The position numbers and the translations under genes were made by a program. From Adineta vaga (Eukaryota; Animalia; Rotifera): 64,000 nucleotides of DNA. The stretch spans positions 8,804,001 through 8,868,000 of the forward strand of contig CP075492.1 of the NCBI GenBank assembly GCA_021613535.1. Direction: 5' to 3'. Under the pieces are notes generated by a model. The model worked only from the letters and a program-made list of their open reading frames with translations. It had not been told where the DNA came from and searched no databases. Within the stretch, counting starts at the first letter, position 1; each line of letters opens with the position of its first letter. Below, piece by piece: positions 306 through 58,360 of this stretch.

Positions 306-3300
306 CTATTCTTTATTTATTGATTCATTTGATTTGAAATATCGCACTGCCGATTGACATGCTGCATATTTCGCCATCTTCTTGTTTTCATGTTGACCGA
401 AAAATTGAACACCATTATTAGCTTTAATATAACAAACAGATGTAAATTTCTCTGTTTTAGAGTCAACTAGACGAAATTGGCTAGAGGAAAAGAAATAATT
501 TATCGATGTTCTTATAACTCTAATATGAAACTTACTGAACAATTTTGCCACCTTGTTCGAAAAATATTCGTACAGGGTTAGAATTAGGATTGTCAATCGA
601 TCGTTCTGTATAGAAATAAAAATAAAAATCTATTTTATAATGAAGAAAAAGTAGTTTACTGATATATTCTCGAAGCAGAGGTTCGATCGTTTGCCAGACC
701 GTTTCTAAGCATTTATCAGAATCGAGAAAAATTGCACCAACTAAAGCTTCAAAAACATCAGCTAAAGCTTTAGGTGCTGTCGAATCAGCCCATTGATCAT
801 TATCCTAAACAGAGAAACGTTGAAATTGAATTTTGATGAAGAGAATAGGATTCATTACTTTGCTTAATTGAACATCCATGGATGAATCTTTTGGAAATAA
901 CACCTCATTATTAGTATAATAGCTGATTTTACCAAATAAATCCGGTGAGTTATGAAGAATTTTCTTATGAAGACCAGCTGCAACCAAAATATAAGACAAA
1001 CGTCCATTATTTGATAAGTCTTGTCGAATATCTGTTACTTGACCTACAATGGATATTATCAAAAATTCAAAAGCTCATCTCGATTGATGAACATTACCTG
1101 GTTTAATATCTTTCTTTTCGATAAAAATATATCGTGTAACAAGAAAATCGAGAACAGCATCTCCCAAGAATTCCAATCTATAGAAAAACAAAAATCGAAT
1201 GATAGACTAATTTTTCAGAAATAGAATACCTTTCATAACAATTTGTCAAACGATTCGCATAACTTGATGGATGAGTAAATGCTGCAATGAGATATGCTTT
1301 ATTTTGAAATGTATAATTAAGTGTTTTTTCAACAGAAGAAAATGCTTGTTCTTCATAAAATTTCTGAATTACATCATCACTTTCATTACAATCCAGATAC
1401 GAACAGAGAATTGATGGTGTTTCTATGACATGATCTAATTTCATGAAAACAAAACTTCTTCACAAAGTTTCTTTCAATTTAATCCTTACTTTCACGATCT
1501 AATGGAATAACATCCAGACCTAACCATTTCATAAACTGTATCGTCGTTGCATAATCAGTCGACAAAAGAAAAGCACCCATAAATGCTTCCATCATATCAG
1601 CAAATGCTTTTCGTTTTACTGTTTGATATTTATATCGTTTTAATTCAAGTACATCATTGGCATTTGTTTCTTGAACAACATATCCAGGTGGAATCCAGTT
1701 GGCATCATCTCCACGAAAATCAACTTTCTTTGCATTTAAATATGATTTTAATTTCTTTAAAAACGCGATTGCATAGAGATTTCCATTCGATATTTGTTTA
1801 GCTTTTTCAACCGTCAATGCACCAGCACCAGCAAGTGGATATCGATGATAAAAACACAACGATATAGTAAGTTTCAGAAAACAATCACCAAGAATTTCAA
1901 AACTTTCCATATCAAAATTTTCATCTGTTGAACGACGAGTAATCGATTGAAAAAGAATTGCAGATGATGGCTGTAATGTAGAATGTTTTGATAATAAATC
2001 ATTGTAGTTTAGACGAATAAGAGGAAGAAACTAGGAGAGAAATAATTGTTATAAAACAAACTAAATTTGAGTACTTCTTAAGAACTTACCGATTTATTTT
2101 GATTAGTTTCTAGATGATCACGGAAATCTACCGGTGGTAGTTGATCAACATCGGCAAACTAAAAGAAATGAATACTTAGTTCGAATGAAATTAGACGAAA
2201 AAATTCCTGGAGTGTAGTATGTTTCTAAATAGGTATAATAGTTATTTCTATAATTCTTATCTAATATCCGTTGTCCTTCAATCGACTGTTGATTATTTCA
2301 TTTCCGTGTTAGAATTACTTCTCTATAATACATACCGGATAGGTTTGAATATTTTCTGCAAATAATTTTCTCAGTCGTTCAATTCGATATAATTGAGAAA
2401 TACGAACAAGTATACTTGGTAATTTATAAATCATTCCAAAATCGTATCGATTTAACGGAGCATAACGAAGTACTTCAATAGGATAATAATAATAAAGAGG
2501 TTCTTGTAATGAATTCTTTGTTTGATTAGTTGAAGATAAGTTTTTTAAATAATTAATTCTTGGTTTTTTAACTCCTTTCATTGTTGCTAAATATAGATCT
2601 CGTCGGATATGTATATCGCGTATGGTATATTCAAAATAATCTGCATAAGTTTGAATATCTTTTCTTTTCGTTTTCTTATCCCATGGATCTGATGCTCGTT
2701 TCAACAAAGAAGGATCAGGTATATTGATATAATATCGATTTCCTTCTAAATGCTTTGGACAGTAAAGTTCTTTATCATTTAATTCGGAATAATTTTGAAC
2801 GAATTTATTTTTTCGATTACAGATTGTCTCCATTCTTTGCCAATCAATTTCACTGTATTCTATATAAATATAAACAAGAGAAATTTTCAAAAATAACTTT
2901 ATTCAATATATATATACTCGTCAATAAACATGGAAGTAATTTAAATGTCGTTTGATCAATATCGAACTTTAGTAGAGTACTAATATTCATATCTTCAAAA
3001 ACATGTTCAAATATATATTTGCAGAAATTTTCAAGTTTAATTCGATATTGTGTATAATCAATTGGTTTTAAATGAATAATTTTAATTGAAATAGCACCAT
3101 CAAAGTCATAAAGATTAAATTTTGGTAACTAAATGTTTAATTGTCAGATTTATTTATCTACGAAAATCTTGTTTAACTTACATTCATTAATAAAGTAGGT
3201 ACAACAAAACCAAGATCAGAATTGATTTGATATAAATGCCATTCATTCGTTATTTGATTACATTTAATAGGAAATGTAGCGATCTAAAGAAACAGACAAG

Positions 3301-7206: not shown

Positions 7207-7671
7207 TTAAAATCGTTTCAATTGATCAATGATACGACTTTCAATTTTAGGTAATAACTGTTGAATTTCACTGGCACAATTCACTACACAGGATTCAAAA
7301 CCGGATCGAAGACGATTATTATCTTTATCACTATTATCTTTTGCTTTATCTTCACAACTACGAATACATCGCATTAATCGTTCTTGAACAGTTTGCATTT
7401 CTTGACTCATCGCTTGTTCAGCGTTAGATATTTTCGATGAACATCGTTCAACACATTGATTGAATTTCAAAGGATCCATTGATGGATCTTCTGTACATCG
7501 ATATGAACAATTAAATGCATCACCCTACAACAAACAAAAAACAGTATGAGTCATTCATTTTTTCTTTCTTTCACAATCTATCCATACATAAATTCGTCGT
7601 AGATAATCACGATGTAATGTTCCTGCCATTGTTGAAATAGATTCATTTAATTTTCGTTGTGAATCTTCCAT
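7207..7671 (-). CDS. FAM136A: FAM136A-like mitochondrial twin CX3C protein (2 exons)
   Basis: MEDSQRKLNESISTM..LRRIY, intron, then NCSYRC..QCVERC..QERLMRCIRSCEDKAKD..ESCVVNC: the four CX3C motifs of the family. Confidence 0.85.
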
Positions 7672-51048: not shown

Positions 51049-53839
51049 TCATTGTTGGTCACTTAATACACTGGATCGTATTGAATCAAGTCGTGCTAGA
51101 TTATCCCCCGCTTCGATGTAATCTTGAATGCAATAAATCAAATGATATGGAATCTCTTATAATAATATACTGACCGTTTTCTAACGCCGCTAAATTTTCT
51201 CGTGCTTCATTAAATTCATTTTCTTCCATTCCTTCACCAATATACCAATGAATAAATGCTCGTTTTGTATACATAAGATCAAATTTGTAATCAATTCGAG
51301 CCCATGCTTCTACAAACGCTGTTGAATTTGTTAATCCAACAGCAGATCGATTGACACGCGTAAGATTACACTCCCCGGAACAAATGTCGGTGGACTTGTG
51401 ACTAAATAATATACTTAATAAAAGCACAAATCAATAATAAAGAGCACTCAACTATAACCAATTTTGAAACCAGTAGGGCACCTACAATTAAAATAATCAT
51501 AAAACTTGCGTCAAACTTTCTGCATTTGAGTAAATAATTGTGGAACCAATGGAAGTAATTATATTTGTTCGCTTATTATTGTGTATACCAGACAGAGTAT
51601 ATAGGTTGCGGTCGAAAGCAAAAATATTTTATTACAAAAACAAATTCATAACTAACTCAACAGTTGTTTTCAAACAAACATGTCCTGTGGTAGTCTTTAT
51701 TACTGTAGTCCTTCAATGGAAATGCGATGCGTTCCTCAACCTGAATTGTGCTGTATATATCCTCCAGAACCAGAACTCATCTGTGTGCCGAATCCTGTCT
51801 GCTGCCCTTCACCACAGATCTGCTGCCCTCCGCCAAAGATCTGCTGTCCTCCACCGCCACAGGTCTGCTGTCCTCCGCCAAAGATCTACTGTCCTCCACC
51901 ACAGGTCTGCTGTCCTCCGCCAAAGATCTACTGTCCTCCACCACAGGTCTGCTGCCCTCCACCAAAGATCTGTTACCCTCCACCAAAGATATGCTGTCCT
52001 CCGCCAAAGATCTGCTGTCCACCACCAAAGATCTGCTGCCCTGCGCCAAAAGACTGCTGTCCATCGCCAAAGATCTGCTACTATCCAGCAAAGGTTTCTT
52101 GCCCTCCTCCAAAGGTCTGCTGTCCTCCGCCGGATTGTCTGCTCACCACCGAAAATTATCTGTTCTCCACCAAAACTAGTCTGCGCTCCTTCCACAAAAT
52201 CAAGCAGCGATTCTACACCACGATCAAGTGAAATGTCTACGACACAATCAACATCGAAATCTTCCAGTTCATCTGCATGCAGAGCCCCTTGTCTACCCTG
52301 TCCACCTTCACCAAAAACAATTTGCATCCCAGCTCCTGAAACAACCTGTGCTCCGGCACCACCACTAGTCTGTGTAACTCCACCACAAATCATTTGCGTT
52401 CCTCGACCCAAACCAGTTTGCATACCCAGACCAAGACCAATCTGTTTTCCAAGACCCGCACCGATCTGCTTTCTACCCCAACCTATTTGCGCCCCCGCCT
52501 GTTGCTGTGGCGACCCAATATTTTGCTGTTGTTAAATATTCTCTACGAATATTTTCAATTATTAGCAAAATACAATAGGAGTATAATAACTTTCTAATTA
52601 AATGAGTTCATTCGTTACTAACTAACATGTTCTGTTTAATTTTTTATATTATTTAATTTAGTGATATTTTTAGTAAATAAAAAGAATTTTTCCGATGCAA
52701 AATAATTTCTGATGTGCATAATTCAATCCAATAGCTTTCTCGAAACTTACCAATCAACAAATGATATTCTTCTATCATTTTTCAATTTATTAATTGTATT
52801 ATTCACATCGATAGGTGATACTACACCTCGATAAATGATTGCAATTGACATATATTTTCCTTTTGATGGTTCTACTTTAACCATTTGATTATTTTGATGA
52901 AATAAGTTTTCAGTTAACGATTGAGTATCATTCTGTTCATCGTAAGCTTTCTCTGTTGAGTTTAATGGTGCATAACTTACCAGAGGAAAATGAATACGTG
53001 GAAATGGAACAAGATTTGTTTGAAATTCATTAAAATCAGCTGTAGTTCCATCTTTAAAACGACTACCTGCTGTTATGTTTGATATGACTTGTGCAATTAA
53101 ACGATTAATATTGACAAAATTTCCTTTGGAAATATTTAAGGAACGTGTACAGATATCCCAAAGTGCCTCATTATCAACAATAAAAACACAATCAGCATAT
53201 TCTAAGCCAACATGAGTATTTAAAACAGTATTGTATGGTTCAGTAATAATAGTGGACAATTTTGGTGATGGAAAAATAGCAAATTCAAGGTGTGTCTTTT
53301 TCCCATAATCGATATTTAGATGTTCCATAAGAAGAGATGTAAAACCAGAACCTGTACCTAACATATTTGGAGAAATTCAATATGAAAAACTTGATGCACA
53401 TTTCATAATTACCACCACCAAAACTATGAAAAATAACAAATCCTTGCAATGTGTGACACTGATTAACAATACGACGTATTTGTTCAAGAACATGATCGAG
53501 TAATTCTCTTCCAATAGTAAAATAACCACGAGCATAATTGGATGCTGCATCTTCTTTACCAGATATAATTCTATCAGGATGAAATAATTGTCGATAGGAA
53601 CCAGTACGAACTTCATCTAAAACTGTTGCTTCTAAATCAATATACAACATTCGTGGTGTATATTTATATCCAATATCTTCGAAAAAAGTTAATAAAGATT
53701 GATCATTGTCAGTTACCGAACAATTCTTCATTAGTGATCCATCAGGCTGTATACCATGTTCAAGACAAAACAATTCCCAACAAGCATGACCTATCTGACA
53801 ACCCGCTTGGCCGATATGAAGACATACAATTTCTTTCAT
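51049..53839 (-). CDS. divergent alpha-tubulin with one apparent 2-nt frameshift (possible pseudogene)
   Basis: [90 protein letters not shown]. Intron 51482-52750 is 1269 nt. Frameshift near 51368. Confidence 0.9.
51680..52535 (+). CDS. Cys/Pro-rich tandem-repeat protein nested antisense in the tubulin intron; frameshifted at 52133
   Basis: ORF 51680-52231 carries the [14 protein letters not shown] repeats, and the same style continues in the +1 frame to 52535 ([16 protein letters not shown]). TATA-like TATATA about 51598. AATAAA at 52676. Confidence 0.75.
51799..52190 (+). repeat. coding tandem repeat, 21-nt unit (TGCTGTCCTCCGCCAAAGATC-like), roughly 15-18 copies
   Basis: Directly visible. 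Variation falls mostly at third codon positions of the CCPPPKI frame. Confidence 0.92.
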
Positions 53840-55746: not shown

Positions 55747-56544
55747 ATGATTATCTGACAATGCTTATCAATTTTAAAAACATTTATTTTACATGTGATT
55801 TTAGATGAAAAAAAACACAAATATTGTGTGATTATAATCTAGAAAAGTACACCGAGCTTTTTTGTATGTGTGTCTAGTCTATTCATATATAGAATGAAGA
55901 ATATATGAATTATTTAATCAATAGTCAGAGAAATGTGTTTATCGTTTATTTTAACAAAATAAACTATCTTAAAAAATCATTGAAAAAGTGTTAGGAAAGG
56001 AAATCATCTCTATTCTATTTGTTATATAATGACGTCATCATATATCTTCGTTCGTTCCACATGATCTCCATCTCACTCTTACGTCATGTTCTCTCTGTGT
56101 GTCATGTGTTCTCTAGTCTTCTGATCTTTTCGTAAACGTATATAAACCCGATGTTTCTAAATAATAAAACGCTTTTGTGTACAAGCACATATCGATATAG
56201 TATTCAATCAAGTAGTTGAACATCACTACCTCACAAAATATATTTACGTCATATTTTATAAAAAAAAGTTATCTTTTATTTATTTGTTTTCGTTAAATAA
56301 TATGTCGCAATTTTTCGCATTTGTATATCGAAGAATTAATGAGAAAAAGCATGACATTGATGTTATCGTTCGATAATGTTGATTACTAATTTTTGACAGA
56401 AAAAAAAACCCAAATATGTTTTCCTCCTACAATAAAACGCTTGATTTCTTTTTATTTCTCTATTATTTTGTATATATACATATACTTCTATACCTATTGA
56501 TAATTTGAATATAGAATATTCAACGACGAAGTAAACAACATCAA

Positions 56545-56778
56545 ATGGAGTTATTACTTGCTGCAGGTGCTGTTGGTTTAGCTGGTTATGCATTGGGTAA
56601 ACGACGAGAACGTCATGAAGTAGCCAATGGTTTTGTAACATACCATGGTAATGGAACTGGTACGCCAGAATATGGTAATGTTCACTATGGTAGCAGTGCT
56701 CGTCGATATCACAATAGTCATCATCACCACCATGCCACATATCAACCAACTACTATGGGTGGTGCTACGCAATATTAA
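56545..56778 (+). CDS. small Gly/Tyr/His-rich protein (77 aa)
   Basis: Clean ORF, more GC-rich than its flanks, with an upstream splice acceptor and AATAAA at about 56837. Confidence 0.6.
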   Translation: MELLLAAGAVGLAGYALGKRRERHEVANGFVTYHGNGTGTPEYGNVHYGSSARRYHNSHHHHHATYQPTTMGGATQY

Positions 56779-57176
56779 AAACAAAACCATAAATTATGAC
56801 TCTTTGATGTGAATCTTTGTCATTTTTGAAATGCAGAATAAATTTCGATTCCTATAGGATGAGAAATCAAATTGAAAAGACTAGAATATTAATTACCTTT
56901 TTATATATGGTCATTGCAATGCATGTTCACCCTTTATAGGATAAGTATTTTATCTACGTGATATTATATAGCGAATGATAAAGCTATCGTTCTATTAACT
57001 CATCGATTAGAAACAAAATCAATCATTTCTATATTAATATTCAATTAACGGCTTCGATCCGATTGTTGACTTCTCGACTTTTTTCTCGAACATTCTGAGC
57101 ATTATGCAAATATTTGATTCATAGTAACGAGTAACATTCAAAATAGAATTTAAATACCCTAGAACTTGATAATTTA

Positions 57177-58360
57177 TTACAGATCACCAATCAAAAATAT
57201 TATTATCATCATCATAACTAGAAATATCATTTTAATTTGACACGTTTTTTCCAAATTCTTTTGACCTGATGTTAATAAATTGACGTTTTGACATTCGACG
57301 TCGATTTTCATAAGTTTTGTCATACTACTAATATTCAAACATTGTCCATAATAATATTGTCTTGGTTCTGAATAACTAATCTTGCCATTCTCAAGGTATA
57401 ATCCATTGACATCTGCTCGGCTTATTTGCAGTTCTTGTGACGAATAATAATCAAGTACTGGATGTTCAGTCACAATATTACATCTAGCAATTATAAGTGC
57501 TTGTTCACCACGAGCGAATATATCTTTAAATGTTATATTTTTCAATAATTCTGTTCATGTTCGTTCAGCATTTGTTGAAAGACCAGTAATGTAAATTGGT
57601 TCGGCTGTATACTCCACCAATCTAAACCAAAAAAGAATCTGTTTCAATAAACATTTGTTCAAATAAAAGATTTGATATTATTACTGATCTATTCTATAGA
57701 TCCATATTGTCGACAGTAATATTAAACATCAATGGTGCACTATGTGACATAATTGCAATACAATCATCACCAGTTGACATATTAGAATTATGAATAGTAA
57801 CATGACGAGAATTGATTAGATCAATACTATCATTATTTAGCCAACGACGATCTCCAATTATAGTTATATTGTCAAAAAGAATATTCTCACTTTTAACAAT
57901 CGTAACTATCCATAGGGGAGATGTCATTACAGTAATATTAACGATTTCTATTGATGAACTGTATCGTACGACAAGTAGTTTTGAGCGACAACTATAAAAG
58001 GAACAATTTGGTAATGTTCATTCCGTTGGTATAAGCATATTTGATGATGAATGATATTCGCGAACGAGATGTCCAGGTGAATTATTGGCACCAACATCAA
58101 TTCGACCTTCACCATGAATATGAACATTATTTGTATGATCAACAAGTAAAAATAGATAATCACAAGGTCCAGTATCACTAGTCATACTCGGAACACATGA
58201 ACAATGACTAGCATTATACGCTAGATAGAAAGTGATATTTGACCATCACCAATAGTATCATCATCCAAAATAGTGAATACAACAGTGTGTTGTGTTAAAA
58301 GGAATTTAGAAAATGAAACAATATTTGATACGAAAAGAAAAAGGAATATATCACGCTTTT
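57177..58360 (-). pseudogene. degraded glycoside hydrolase family 28 (polygalacturonase-like)
   Basis: SPLWIVTIVKSENILFDNITI..NNDSIDL..STGDDCIAI, plus DWW and AEPIYIT in different frames. In-frame stops and frameshifts. Confidence 0.8.

Follow-up and report, generated by a model that had tools for sequence, protein, structure and literature searches.

A predicted cysteine- and proline-rich repeat gene nested antisense in an alpha-tubulin intron of Adineta vaga and its place in a family of bdelloid mini-proteins

This report concerns a stretch of 64,000 nucleotides (nt) from the bdelloid rotifer Adineta vaga (GenBank assembly GCA_021613535.1, contig CP075492.1, positions 8,804,001 to 8,868,000, forward strand), termed the window in the following, and therein an alpha-tubulin gene on the minus strand (51049-53839) that harbors in its second intron a cassette of opposite orientation coding for a protein rich in cysteine and proline. 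Judged from sequence, this cassette is an intact, intronless protein-coding gene of A. vaga, antisense to its host, that is probably unannotated in the reference. Exact look-up of three forms of its open reading frame (ORF) in the protein collection found no entry.

With regard to the host, the exons were searched one by one, and those flanking the long intron carry Pfam families PF00091 (Tubulin) and PF03953 (Tubulin_C). Exon 1 (53413-53839), exon 2 (52751-53357, ending in the residues FVDW), exon 3 (51453-51481, starting with CPTG), exon 4 (51175-51401) and exon 5 (51049-51122, including the stop codon) amount to 454 codons with an open frame once two surplus assembly bases near 51367 in exon 4 are removed. 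The exon borders, which conform to GT..AG, were read from the sequence, and the splice between exons 4 and 5 is deduced solely from GT..AG and homology. A contig derived from sequencing run X1 has two bases fewer than the assembly at 51367 and restores the reading PGSDLTRVN, a site at which the orthologue of Adineta ricciae reads PGGDLAPTN. An initial annotation, made from the letters of the window, had reported an intron about 20 times the local norm between FVDW and CPTG. In agreement with this, the second intron (51482-52750, minus strand, GTAAGT..TGTAG, splitting FVDW from CPTG at TG|G) measures 1269 nt, about 24 times the remaining introns of 55, 51 and 52 nt, and encloses the entire nested cassette.

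By comparison with its relatives, the host gene is a divergent alpha-tubulin paralogue. Its matches are named tubulin alpha, those from outside the bdelloids at about 56% identity or less, and identity to any other tubulin locus in the A. vaga genome is at most 64%; exact look-up of the tubulin exon ORF found nothing on record. Exon 2 shares 72-88% identity with bdelloid orthologues, whose gene models all end at FVDW (341-344 residues). The tubulin gene and its neighbors are conserved in at least 11 bdelloid contigs, and a gene for a Ras-family GTPase adjoins tubulin and intronic guest in the orthologous loci. Relative to A. ricciae, the ratio of nonsynonymous to synonymous divergence (dN/dS) of the host is 0.05. 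The predicted C-terminal tail (...DQQ) lacks the usual acidic, Glu-rich and Tyr-ended sequence.

The nested cassette has a guanine-plus-cytosine (GC) content of 0.52-0.58 versus about 0.30 in its surroundings. All its features lie on the plus strand, starting with a putative promoter (51596-51630) that consists of a TATA box (51598-51604) and, behind it, the block TGCGGTCGAAAGCAAAAATATT. The first part of the coding sequence (51680-52132, 151 codons, ATG at 51680) specifies a non-repeat N-terminus that begins with MSCGSLYYC and then a heptad array, for which Tandem Repeats Finder delimits 15.6 copies of a 21-nt unit coding CCPPPK(I/V) (51798-52128), with C/Y, K/Q and I/V variants as well as synonymous changes in Pro and Cys codons. 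The second part (52134-52535, 133 codons plus the stop codon at 52533-52535) carries two final heptads of degenerate sequence, a linker rich in Ser and Thr (about 52185-52277) and a second Cys/Pro block (52278-52532) of PxPxxC units of 8-9 residues with CCC at its end; the minus strand is not open across 52134-52532. An AATAAA at 52676-52681 is the putative poly(A) signal. Read from the DNA alone, coding sequence, TATA block and AATAAA all fall within the intron, and the GC-rich antisense cassette with TATA box near 51598, ATG at 51680 and AATAAA at 52676 that the initial annotation had described is thus found as proposed.

The same annotation had called the cassette complete; a continuous ORF is present in contigs derived from reads and not in the assembly. 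In the latter, the first frame extends from 51680 to 52231 and the linker and second block lie in a different frame (52134-52535), since the assembly is short of two bases at 52132-52134 relative to every read-derived contig that crosses this site. Such contigs were available from three samples of two studies (runs X1, X3 and X4): in X3 and X4, AA is inserted behind 52132, and in X1, GG is inserted behind 52134 together with the exchange G52133A. With either version, a PPPK(I/V)V heptad is regained and a single ORF of 285 codons results, and the state of the assembly occurs in none of the read-derived contigs. One X1 haplotype is shorter by 42 nt, i.e., two heptads, and the only length variants seen were in frame. 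A 43-nt GT..AG "intron" at about 52137-52179 was considered as a repair of the frame and rejected, because the reads show the two-base insertion and because the region codes for heptads of the conserved type. From these sequence comparisons we take both two-base discrepancies, the surplus at 51367 and the deficit at 52132-52134, to be consensus errors of the assembly and not mutations. Such discrepancies suggest local consensus errors at heterozygous sites, and other genes in the assembly may be affected likewise.

The heptad sequence is confined to one place in the A. vaga assembly (100.8 Mb, six contigs). Intron DNA matched only itself and one further low-complexity stretch of 83 nt, beyond which searches with the two protein halves, performed separately for the two frame pieces, did not reveal any paralogue either. 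A degenerate 35-nt heptad pattern gave eight matches, all at the nested locus, and none with the reversed control, while a looser CCPPP..CCPPP pattern met three loci in 100 Mb. The possibility that the repeat occurs genome-wide as a minisatellite or transposon fragment, which had been named as a check on the gene, is thereby refuted as far as sequence comparison allows.

Searches with the guest protein itself were blank or misleading. Word-index protein searches with each half of the nested ORF found no homologue, and whole-library HMMER with the C-terminal half returned six matches, all of them unrelated proteins with periodic Cys repeats that were discarded. The lack of hits does not show that homologues are missing, as even the A. 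ricciae orthologue escaped detection; low-complexity correction probably accounts for this. Orthologues were therefore sought via exon 2 of the host tubulin. In two separate assemblies of A. ricciae (L028), the same tubulin intron measures 1455 nt and contains an antisense single-exon gene called at 342 residues, followed by the C-terminal tubulin exons and the same Ras-family neighbor. Its product shows heptads of the form (V/I)(C/Y)PPPKL as well as a Ser/Thr linker, and its C-terminal block can be aligned with that of A. vaga (BLASTP 8e-23 for the two proteins). Homologues that keep both frame and nesting, for which the initial annotation had recommended looking, do accordingly exist, with the A. 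ricciae gene in the same intron, orientation and frame.

The comparison of the two species also speaks for coding. The guest gene has a dN/dS of 0.28 over 119 codons and of 0.21 over the last 67, with a synonymous divergence (dS) of 1.1-1.26 that equals dS of the host tubulin. Differences are distributed over the three codon positions as 16/13/30, an excess at the third position with p=0.015. The promoter block GTATATA-GG-TGCGG-CGAAAGCAAAAATATT is nearly identical in A. ricciae and recognizable in the uncultured bdelloid L034, and the surroundings of AATAAA (TTAG-A/T-AAATAAAAA) are kept in A. ricciae, both despite neutral sites being near saturation (dS about 1.2).

Relatives of the nested gene occur as free-standing mini-genes in A. 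vaga itself. The CCPPP pattern search led to an ORF of 59 residues on C5, which has two paralogues on C4 and C5. These three mini-genes (L051, L052 and L053, at C5:2849122-2849298 on the minus, C4:443730-443876 on the plus and C5:237591-237761 on the minus strand, respectively) encode 52-59 residues, are annotated as hypothetical proteins (UJR19497.1, UJR29705.1 and UJR18855.1) and each possess their own TATA box and AATAAA; they are recent duplicates, since dS among them is 0.18-0.30. They have in common a CC(P)n arm, and a tail with the fixed 33-residue pattern CVPVCCCVE..CCDPCLG.RRITQ..QTMVRIQ. Similar small genes reside in the tubulin intron of other bdelloids. In L034, an intron of 350 nt contains an antisense mini-ORF of about 50 residues, with a one-base frame slip in a 5x assembly, whose tail matches A. 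vaga paralogue P0129 at 1e-11. Scanning metagenome contigs with an alignment of the free-standing paralogues revealed two further mini-ORFs from uncultured bdelloids, L054 (41 residues) and L055 (70 residues), again antisense within the tubulin intron. Adineta steineri has a long intronic gene (L032 6256-7210, minus strand) with different repeats, namely a 48-nt unit coding the 16-residue HKERSPTPQTVHTHTS and QQNY/PQPQ-rich units, ahead of the full conserved tail; its array is broken by an assembly gap (N near 7207), and the C-terminal tubulin exons were not found on that contig. In tblastn, L055 matched the A. steineri intron at 7.6e-10 and the second block in the A. vaga intron at 2e-4.

The nested gene of A. 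vaga shares position and motif with these relatives. Like the intronic members, it lies in opposite orientation within this tubulin intron and next to the gene for the Ras-family GTPase; it combines an N-terminal CC(P)n arm with a PICxPxCCC motif, and alignments A1 and A3 place it in register with the other members. In both long forms, those of A. vaga and A. ricciae, the stop codon follows eight residues behind the CCC motif (YYC in A. ricciae), so that the complete 33-residue domain ending in ..QTMVRIQ is absent from both; DNA downstream of the stop aligns only weakly to the second strand of other family members. The domain itself has a dN/dS of 0.25-0.4, with the exception of the close paralogue pair P0127-P0129 at 0.58. 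From these likenesses, the nested gene of A. vaga is assigned to a bdelloid-restricted family, newly defined here, of cysteine-rich mini-proteins of 41-70 residues without a relative in Pfam, the PDB or among known folds.

On this assignment, the long Cys/Pro form is a derived state, reached by an expansion that is specific to its lineage and amounts to about five-fold growth from a mini-protein. The ancestral protein would have had 40-70 residues, with an N-terminal CC(P)n arm and the 33-residue domain CxPVCCCV..C.PC.G......C....VRIQ. In the line of A. vaga and A. ricciae, tandem amplification of CCPPP would have produced about 15 heptads and that of PQPICVP the units of 8-9 residues, a Ser/Thr linker would have been gained, and a stop after the first hairpin strand would have removed the second one. 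Other bdelloid loci show truncated guests or none at all. L042 (207-nt intron) keeps just the last 22 residues of the guest, L037 (379-nt intron) has lost its ATG, an AT-rich intron of about 1130 nt in Rotaria sp. Silwood1 (L030) is devoid of guest remnants, and L035, L036 and L039 have tubulin introns of 48-49 nt and no guest gene. A tree of tubulin exon 2, calculated with regard to gain versus loss of the guest, leaves seven of ten inner branches open, and the direction is not fixed because of this lack of resolution. The nesting probably reflects no more than the place at which the ancestral mini-gene happened to insert, and interference of the guest with transcription of the host tubulin is possible.

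Sequencing runs, compared over 3001 nt of the locus, provide a hint regarding transcription. In X4 and X5, runs from 2025 whose type is not recorded, contigs at depth 4-6 are confined to 51645-52592, leaving the tubulin exons and the remainder of the intron without any contig. The first contig of X5 begins at 51645, and contigs of X3 and X4 end at 52592-52602; in X3, a low-depth and DNA-like run, 19 of 30 bins are covered, including an exon/intron boundary. The pattern of X4 and X5 looks like a guest transcript without the host, from contigs that show neither strand nor transcript ends, and is taken as a hint only.

Taken together, the reading that the locus comprises an intact nested gene, positionally orthologous to the other intronic guests, belonging to the mini-protein family, amplified in tandem and deprived of one hairpin strand is given a probability of about 0.8. 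The initial annotation had recognized the gene and overlooked the frame break, the mini-protein family and the derived, lineage-specific nature of the long form. Several observations weigh against this reading or against functional models built on it. No run recorded as RNA contains the stretch searched, nine presumed RNA runs from three studies contain almost none of its words, and X4 and X5 are of unrecorded type with strandless contigs; no expression under standard conditions is therefore established, and it may be weak or limited to particular stages. The assembly does carry the frame break, and should the reference clone truly possess it, one of its alleles would be non-functional. BLASTP of the A. 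vaga tail against the free-standing paralogues (P0128) gave no significant match, and the link of the long form to the mini-family consists of position, the 2e-4 match with L055 and the PICxPxCCC motif. Nor is the Cys content constant, with 19% in A. vaga versus 12% in A. ricciae, which weakens models that require every Cys. In addition, living cytoplasm is reducing, so that disulfide cross-linking would need a special compartment or an oxidase.

The predicted product of 285 residues is dominated by Pro (83, 29%) and Cys (53, 19%), contains eight Tyr and three Phe and neither His nor Trp, as counted over the 284 residues of the two ORF pieces, and its halves are basic (pI of about 8.3 and 8.7). 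In line with the initial annotation, which had seen no signal peptide, the N-terminus is not hydrophobic, and neither a signal peptide nor a transmembrane stretch was found in the product, the maximum Kyte-Doolittle value for a 19-residue window being 1.24. The protein had also been suggested to be undescribed, which agrees with the lack of any Pfam family in hmmscan, both for the two A. vaga halves (E up to 1) and for the mini-proteins and the orthologue from A. ricciae (E up to 10); a profile search of the PDB with the family likewise found nothing. With alignment A3 as input, AlphaFold predicts the 33-residue domain as a long beta-hairpin (strands 19-33 and 37-51) with a predicted local distance difference test (pLDDT) score of 82.6, while the C-terminal half of the A. 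vaga protein reaches a pLDDT of 43 and no confident fold. Fold searches with the hairpin model (Foldseek against the PDB, and the shape search of the ESM Atlas) returned only generic long hairpins and were discarded. Feature searches of the ESM Atlas scored 0.76-0.80, and the nearest clusters, at 0.78-0.80, are named KRTAP16-like and SPRR5-like, which serves as a lead only.

With regard to function, a scleroprotein is a plausible proposal. The part in the intrasyncytial lamina or in a microtubule-associated structure that the initial annotation had suggested, like the suggested co-regulation or mutual exclusion with the host tubulin, gains no support from the present results and is conjectural. 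Cys and Tyr alternate at one heptad position, both within A. vaga and relative to A. ricciae, and the heptads of the latter have Val in place of the first Cys of A. vaga. Side chains able to cross-link or to stack along a polyproline spacer explain this exchange of Cys, Tyr and Val better than metal ligands at fixed positions would. Rigid polyproline-II spacers would present Cys and Tyr side chains for covalent or oxidative cross-linking. From the interchange of Cys and Tyr on such a spacer and the lack of a signal peptide or transmembrane stretch it follows that a structural, cross-linked intracellular role is the best guess, and we tentatively propose, at odds somewhat short of even, that the product may be an intracellular matrix or scaffold protein, a functional analogue of SPRR, LCE and KRTAP proteins.

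Other explanations were weighed against such a scaffold. A non-coding, GC-rich minisatellite or transposon fragment that is open by chance would explain why no plus-strand frame and only two minus-strand frames are closed over the heptad array, and why word and HMMER searches with the protein halves yielded no homologue; the single genomic locus, the frame-specific orthologue, its dN/dS and the conserved promoter and poly(A) blocks favor coding to an extent that makes this explanation hardly credible. If coding is accepted, the unit could still be mainly regulatory, modulating the host tubulin in antisense, or a slowly decaying relic with a dispensable protein. The loss of the second hairpin strand in the long form, the full domain kept by the free-standing A. 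vaga paralogues, the decayed or truncated guests of L037 and L042, the absence of a guest from the long Rotaria intron and the coverage of the cassette without tubulin exons in X4 and X5 would all agree with this. However, dN/dS is 0.2-0.3 over 119 codons that lie precisely outside the lost domain, and the ORF is intact in both species and all haplotypes seen, with length variants in frame only, such that we judge a regulatory unit or relic to be quite improbable.

Two further alternatives accept the protein and assign it a different task. A thiol-based metal or redox buffer, in which Cys residues would take up Zn, Cu or oxidants in the manner of metallothionein, for example upon desiccation, would suit a predicted cytosolic protein with 53 Cys in CC and CCC clusters, the more so as the mini-proteins are of metallothionein size (52-70 residues) with 8-11 Cys and a CxPC motif. 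On the other hand, no Pfam metallothionein model matched, aromatic residues are present (eight Tyr, three Phe) where few or none would be expected, and the Cys residues are not invariant ligands, with Tyr replacing them freely in the heptads and Val replacing one Cys per pair in A. ricciae. A Pro content of 29% with spacing of the polyproline-II type is unlike metal-thiolate clusters, and the mini-domain is predicted as an extended hairpin and not as a cluster fold; a buffer function appears unlikely. In the other alternative, S-acylation of an N-terminal MxCC and of Cys strings would tether the long form or the ancestral mini-protein to membranes. Intronic mini-forms do begin with MICC or MICP and the long forms end with CCC, which resemble dual-palmitoylation motifs. 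The MICC start is not conserved, though, as the A. vaga long form begins with MSCGS and the free-standing paralogues with MxxG....NPCC, and neither a hydrophobic segment nor a Pfam CYSTM match was found, so that palmitoylation is quite improbable.

For the proposed scaffold protein, one plausible candidate site, offered as a guess, is the intracytoplasmic lamina, an electron-dense layer inside the rotifer syncytial epidermis (PMC13403294). The literature on rotifer Cys/Pro proteins, lamina composition and nested genes in A. vaga gave nothing relevant beyond morphology. A more far-reaching version, which we consider rather unlikely, is that mini-family and expanded member together build the lamina, with the hairpin core polymerizing and the Cys/Tyr/Pro arms cross-linking. 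The lamina has been described in older biochemical work as keratin-like and disulfide-bonded. If this version were true, it would amount to an intracellular "cornified" skeleton that arose independently of SPRR, LCE and KRTAP proteins as well as of sauropsid corneous beta-proteins, and repeat expansion would tune the toughness of the integument among Adineta species.

Among known systems, the mini-proteins UJR19497.1, UJR29705.1 and UJR18855.1 and those of L034, L054 and L055 are the true relatives, in which the PICVPVCCC motif comes after a CC(P)n arm. Like the nested gene, the mini-genes are intronless, have TATA and AATAAA elements and lack a signal peptide, and the intronic ones share intron and orientation; they differ in being 4-7 times shorter, in having at most a few CPPP units and in retaining the 33-residue hairpin domain in full. 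Mammalian SPRR, LCE, loricrin and KRTAP proteins resemble the nested gene in a single-exon coding sequence, short tandem Cys/Pro units of 7-9 residues, the lack of a signal peptide and fast changes in repeat number, and would share with it an intracellular, cross-linked matrix role that is only proposed here. They belong to a different phylum, and the nested protein is without their Gln/Lys-rich transglutaminase termini. Neither the A. vaga halves nor the A. ricciae orthologue or the mini-proteins matched Pfam Keratin_B2, Cornifin or LCE (E up to 1-10). The likeness to SPRR, LCE and KRTAP drawn in the initial annotation consequently stands for composition and not for any relationship in Pfam.

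Proteins of SMCP and of the Drosophila Mst84D/87F type also have CCPPKP-like repeats and are cytoplasmic and disulfide-hardened. They are specific to the male germline, whereas bdelloids have no males, and the likeness is one of general character and not of alignment. In sauropsid corneous beta-proteins, Cys/Pro-rich arms extend on both sides of a beta-sheet core of about 34 residues, an architecture that the mini-family matches, with a hairpin that is predicted here and truncated in the nested gene; homology is not expected. CYSTM proteins (PF12734) are similarly small, with a Pro/Gln/Tyr-rich N-terminal part, for which the QQNY/PQPQ-rich region of A. steineri provides a parallel, and a C-terminal Cys cluster. 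In this case the differences comprise the lack of a Pfam match, Kyte-Doolittle maxima of 1.24-1.59 without a stretch of transmembrane grade and a C-terminus predicted as a charged beta-hairpin. With respect to the arrangement, the classical nested gene is that for a pupal cuticle protein inside an intron of Drosophila Gart, which is likewise a small gene with its own signals, antisense in an intron of an unrelated conserved host; a structural role is presumed for the bdelloid gene. It differs from the Gart case in that the bdelloid guest can be traced across related species from a mini-ORF via a large repeat protein to decay.

For A. vaga, the analysis adds a probably unannotated gene to the reference and flags two apparent two-base assembly errors that break genes. 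The bdelloid loci offer a natural series, unusually complete, of 41, about 50, 70, 285 and 342 residues in which an intron-lodged micro-protein gene would have grown into a large low-complexity protein. The long forms in this series have lost the original domain, and in sister lineages the gene has decayed or is not present. Should the product be structural, it would provide a first molecular handle on the intracellular skeleton of rotifers. The locus also lends itself to a clean test of how transcription of a host gene and that of its antisense guest affect each other.

Two observations concern other genes. A gene for a polygalacturonase-like protein of glycoside hydrolase family 28 is located 2.5-4 kb upstream of tubulin in most orthologous bdelloid contigs (e.g., L028 846-2547, L032 292-1797, L035 337-1842 and L036 1747-3186), and the ORFs scanned on the matching side of the window (56366-57545) had no Pfam match. 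The other one is a CCPPPPM locus at C6:11.11 Mb, which was considered as an ohnologue of the nested gene and does not look so, the similarity being of low complexity only (34 bits); the closest paralogue of the Ras-family neighbor lies 3.7 Mb away from it. This locus (L002, C6:11110013-11113095, ORFs 361-744 and 1366-1695, plus strand) constitutes a further gene without signal peptide or Pfam match, and its product has Gly-rich ends (GGFGG, GGYGG) around CPxP units and nine CCPPPPM heptads, a layout that resembles loricrin or the high-Gly/Tyr KRTAPs.

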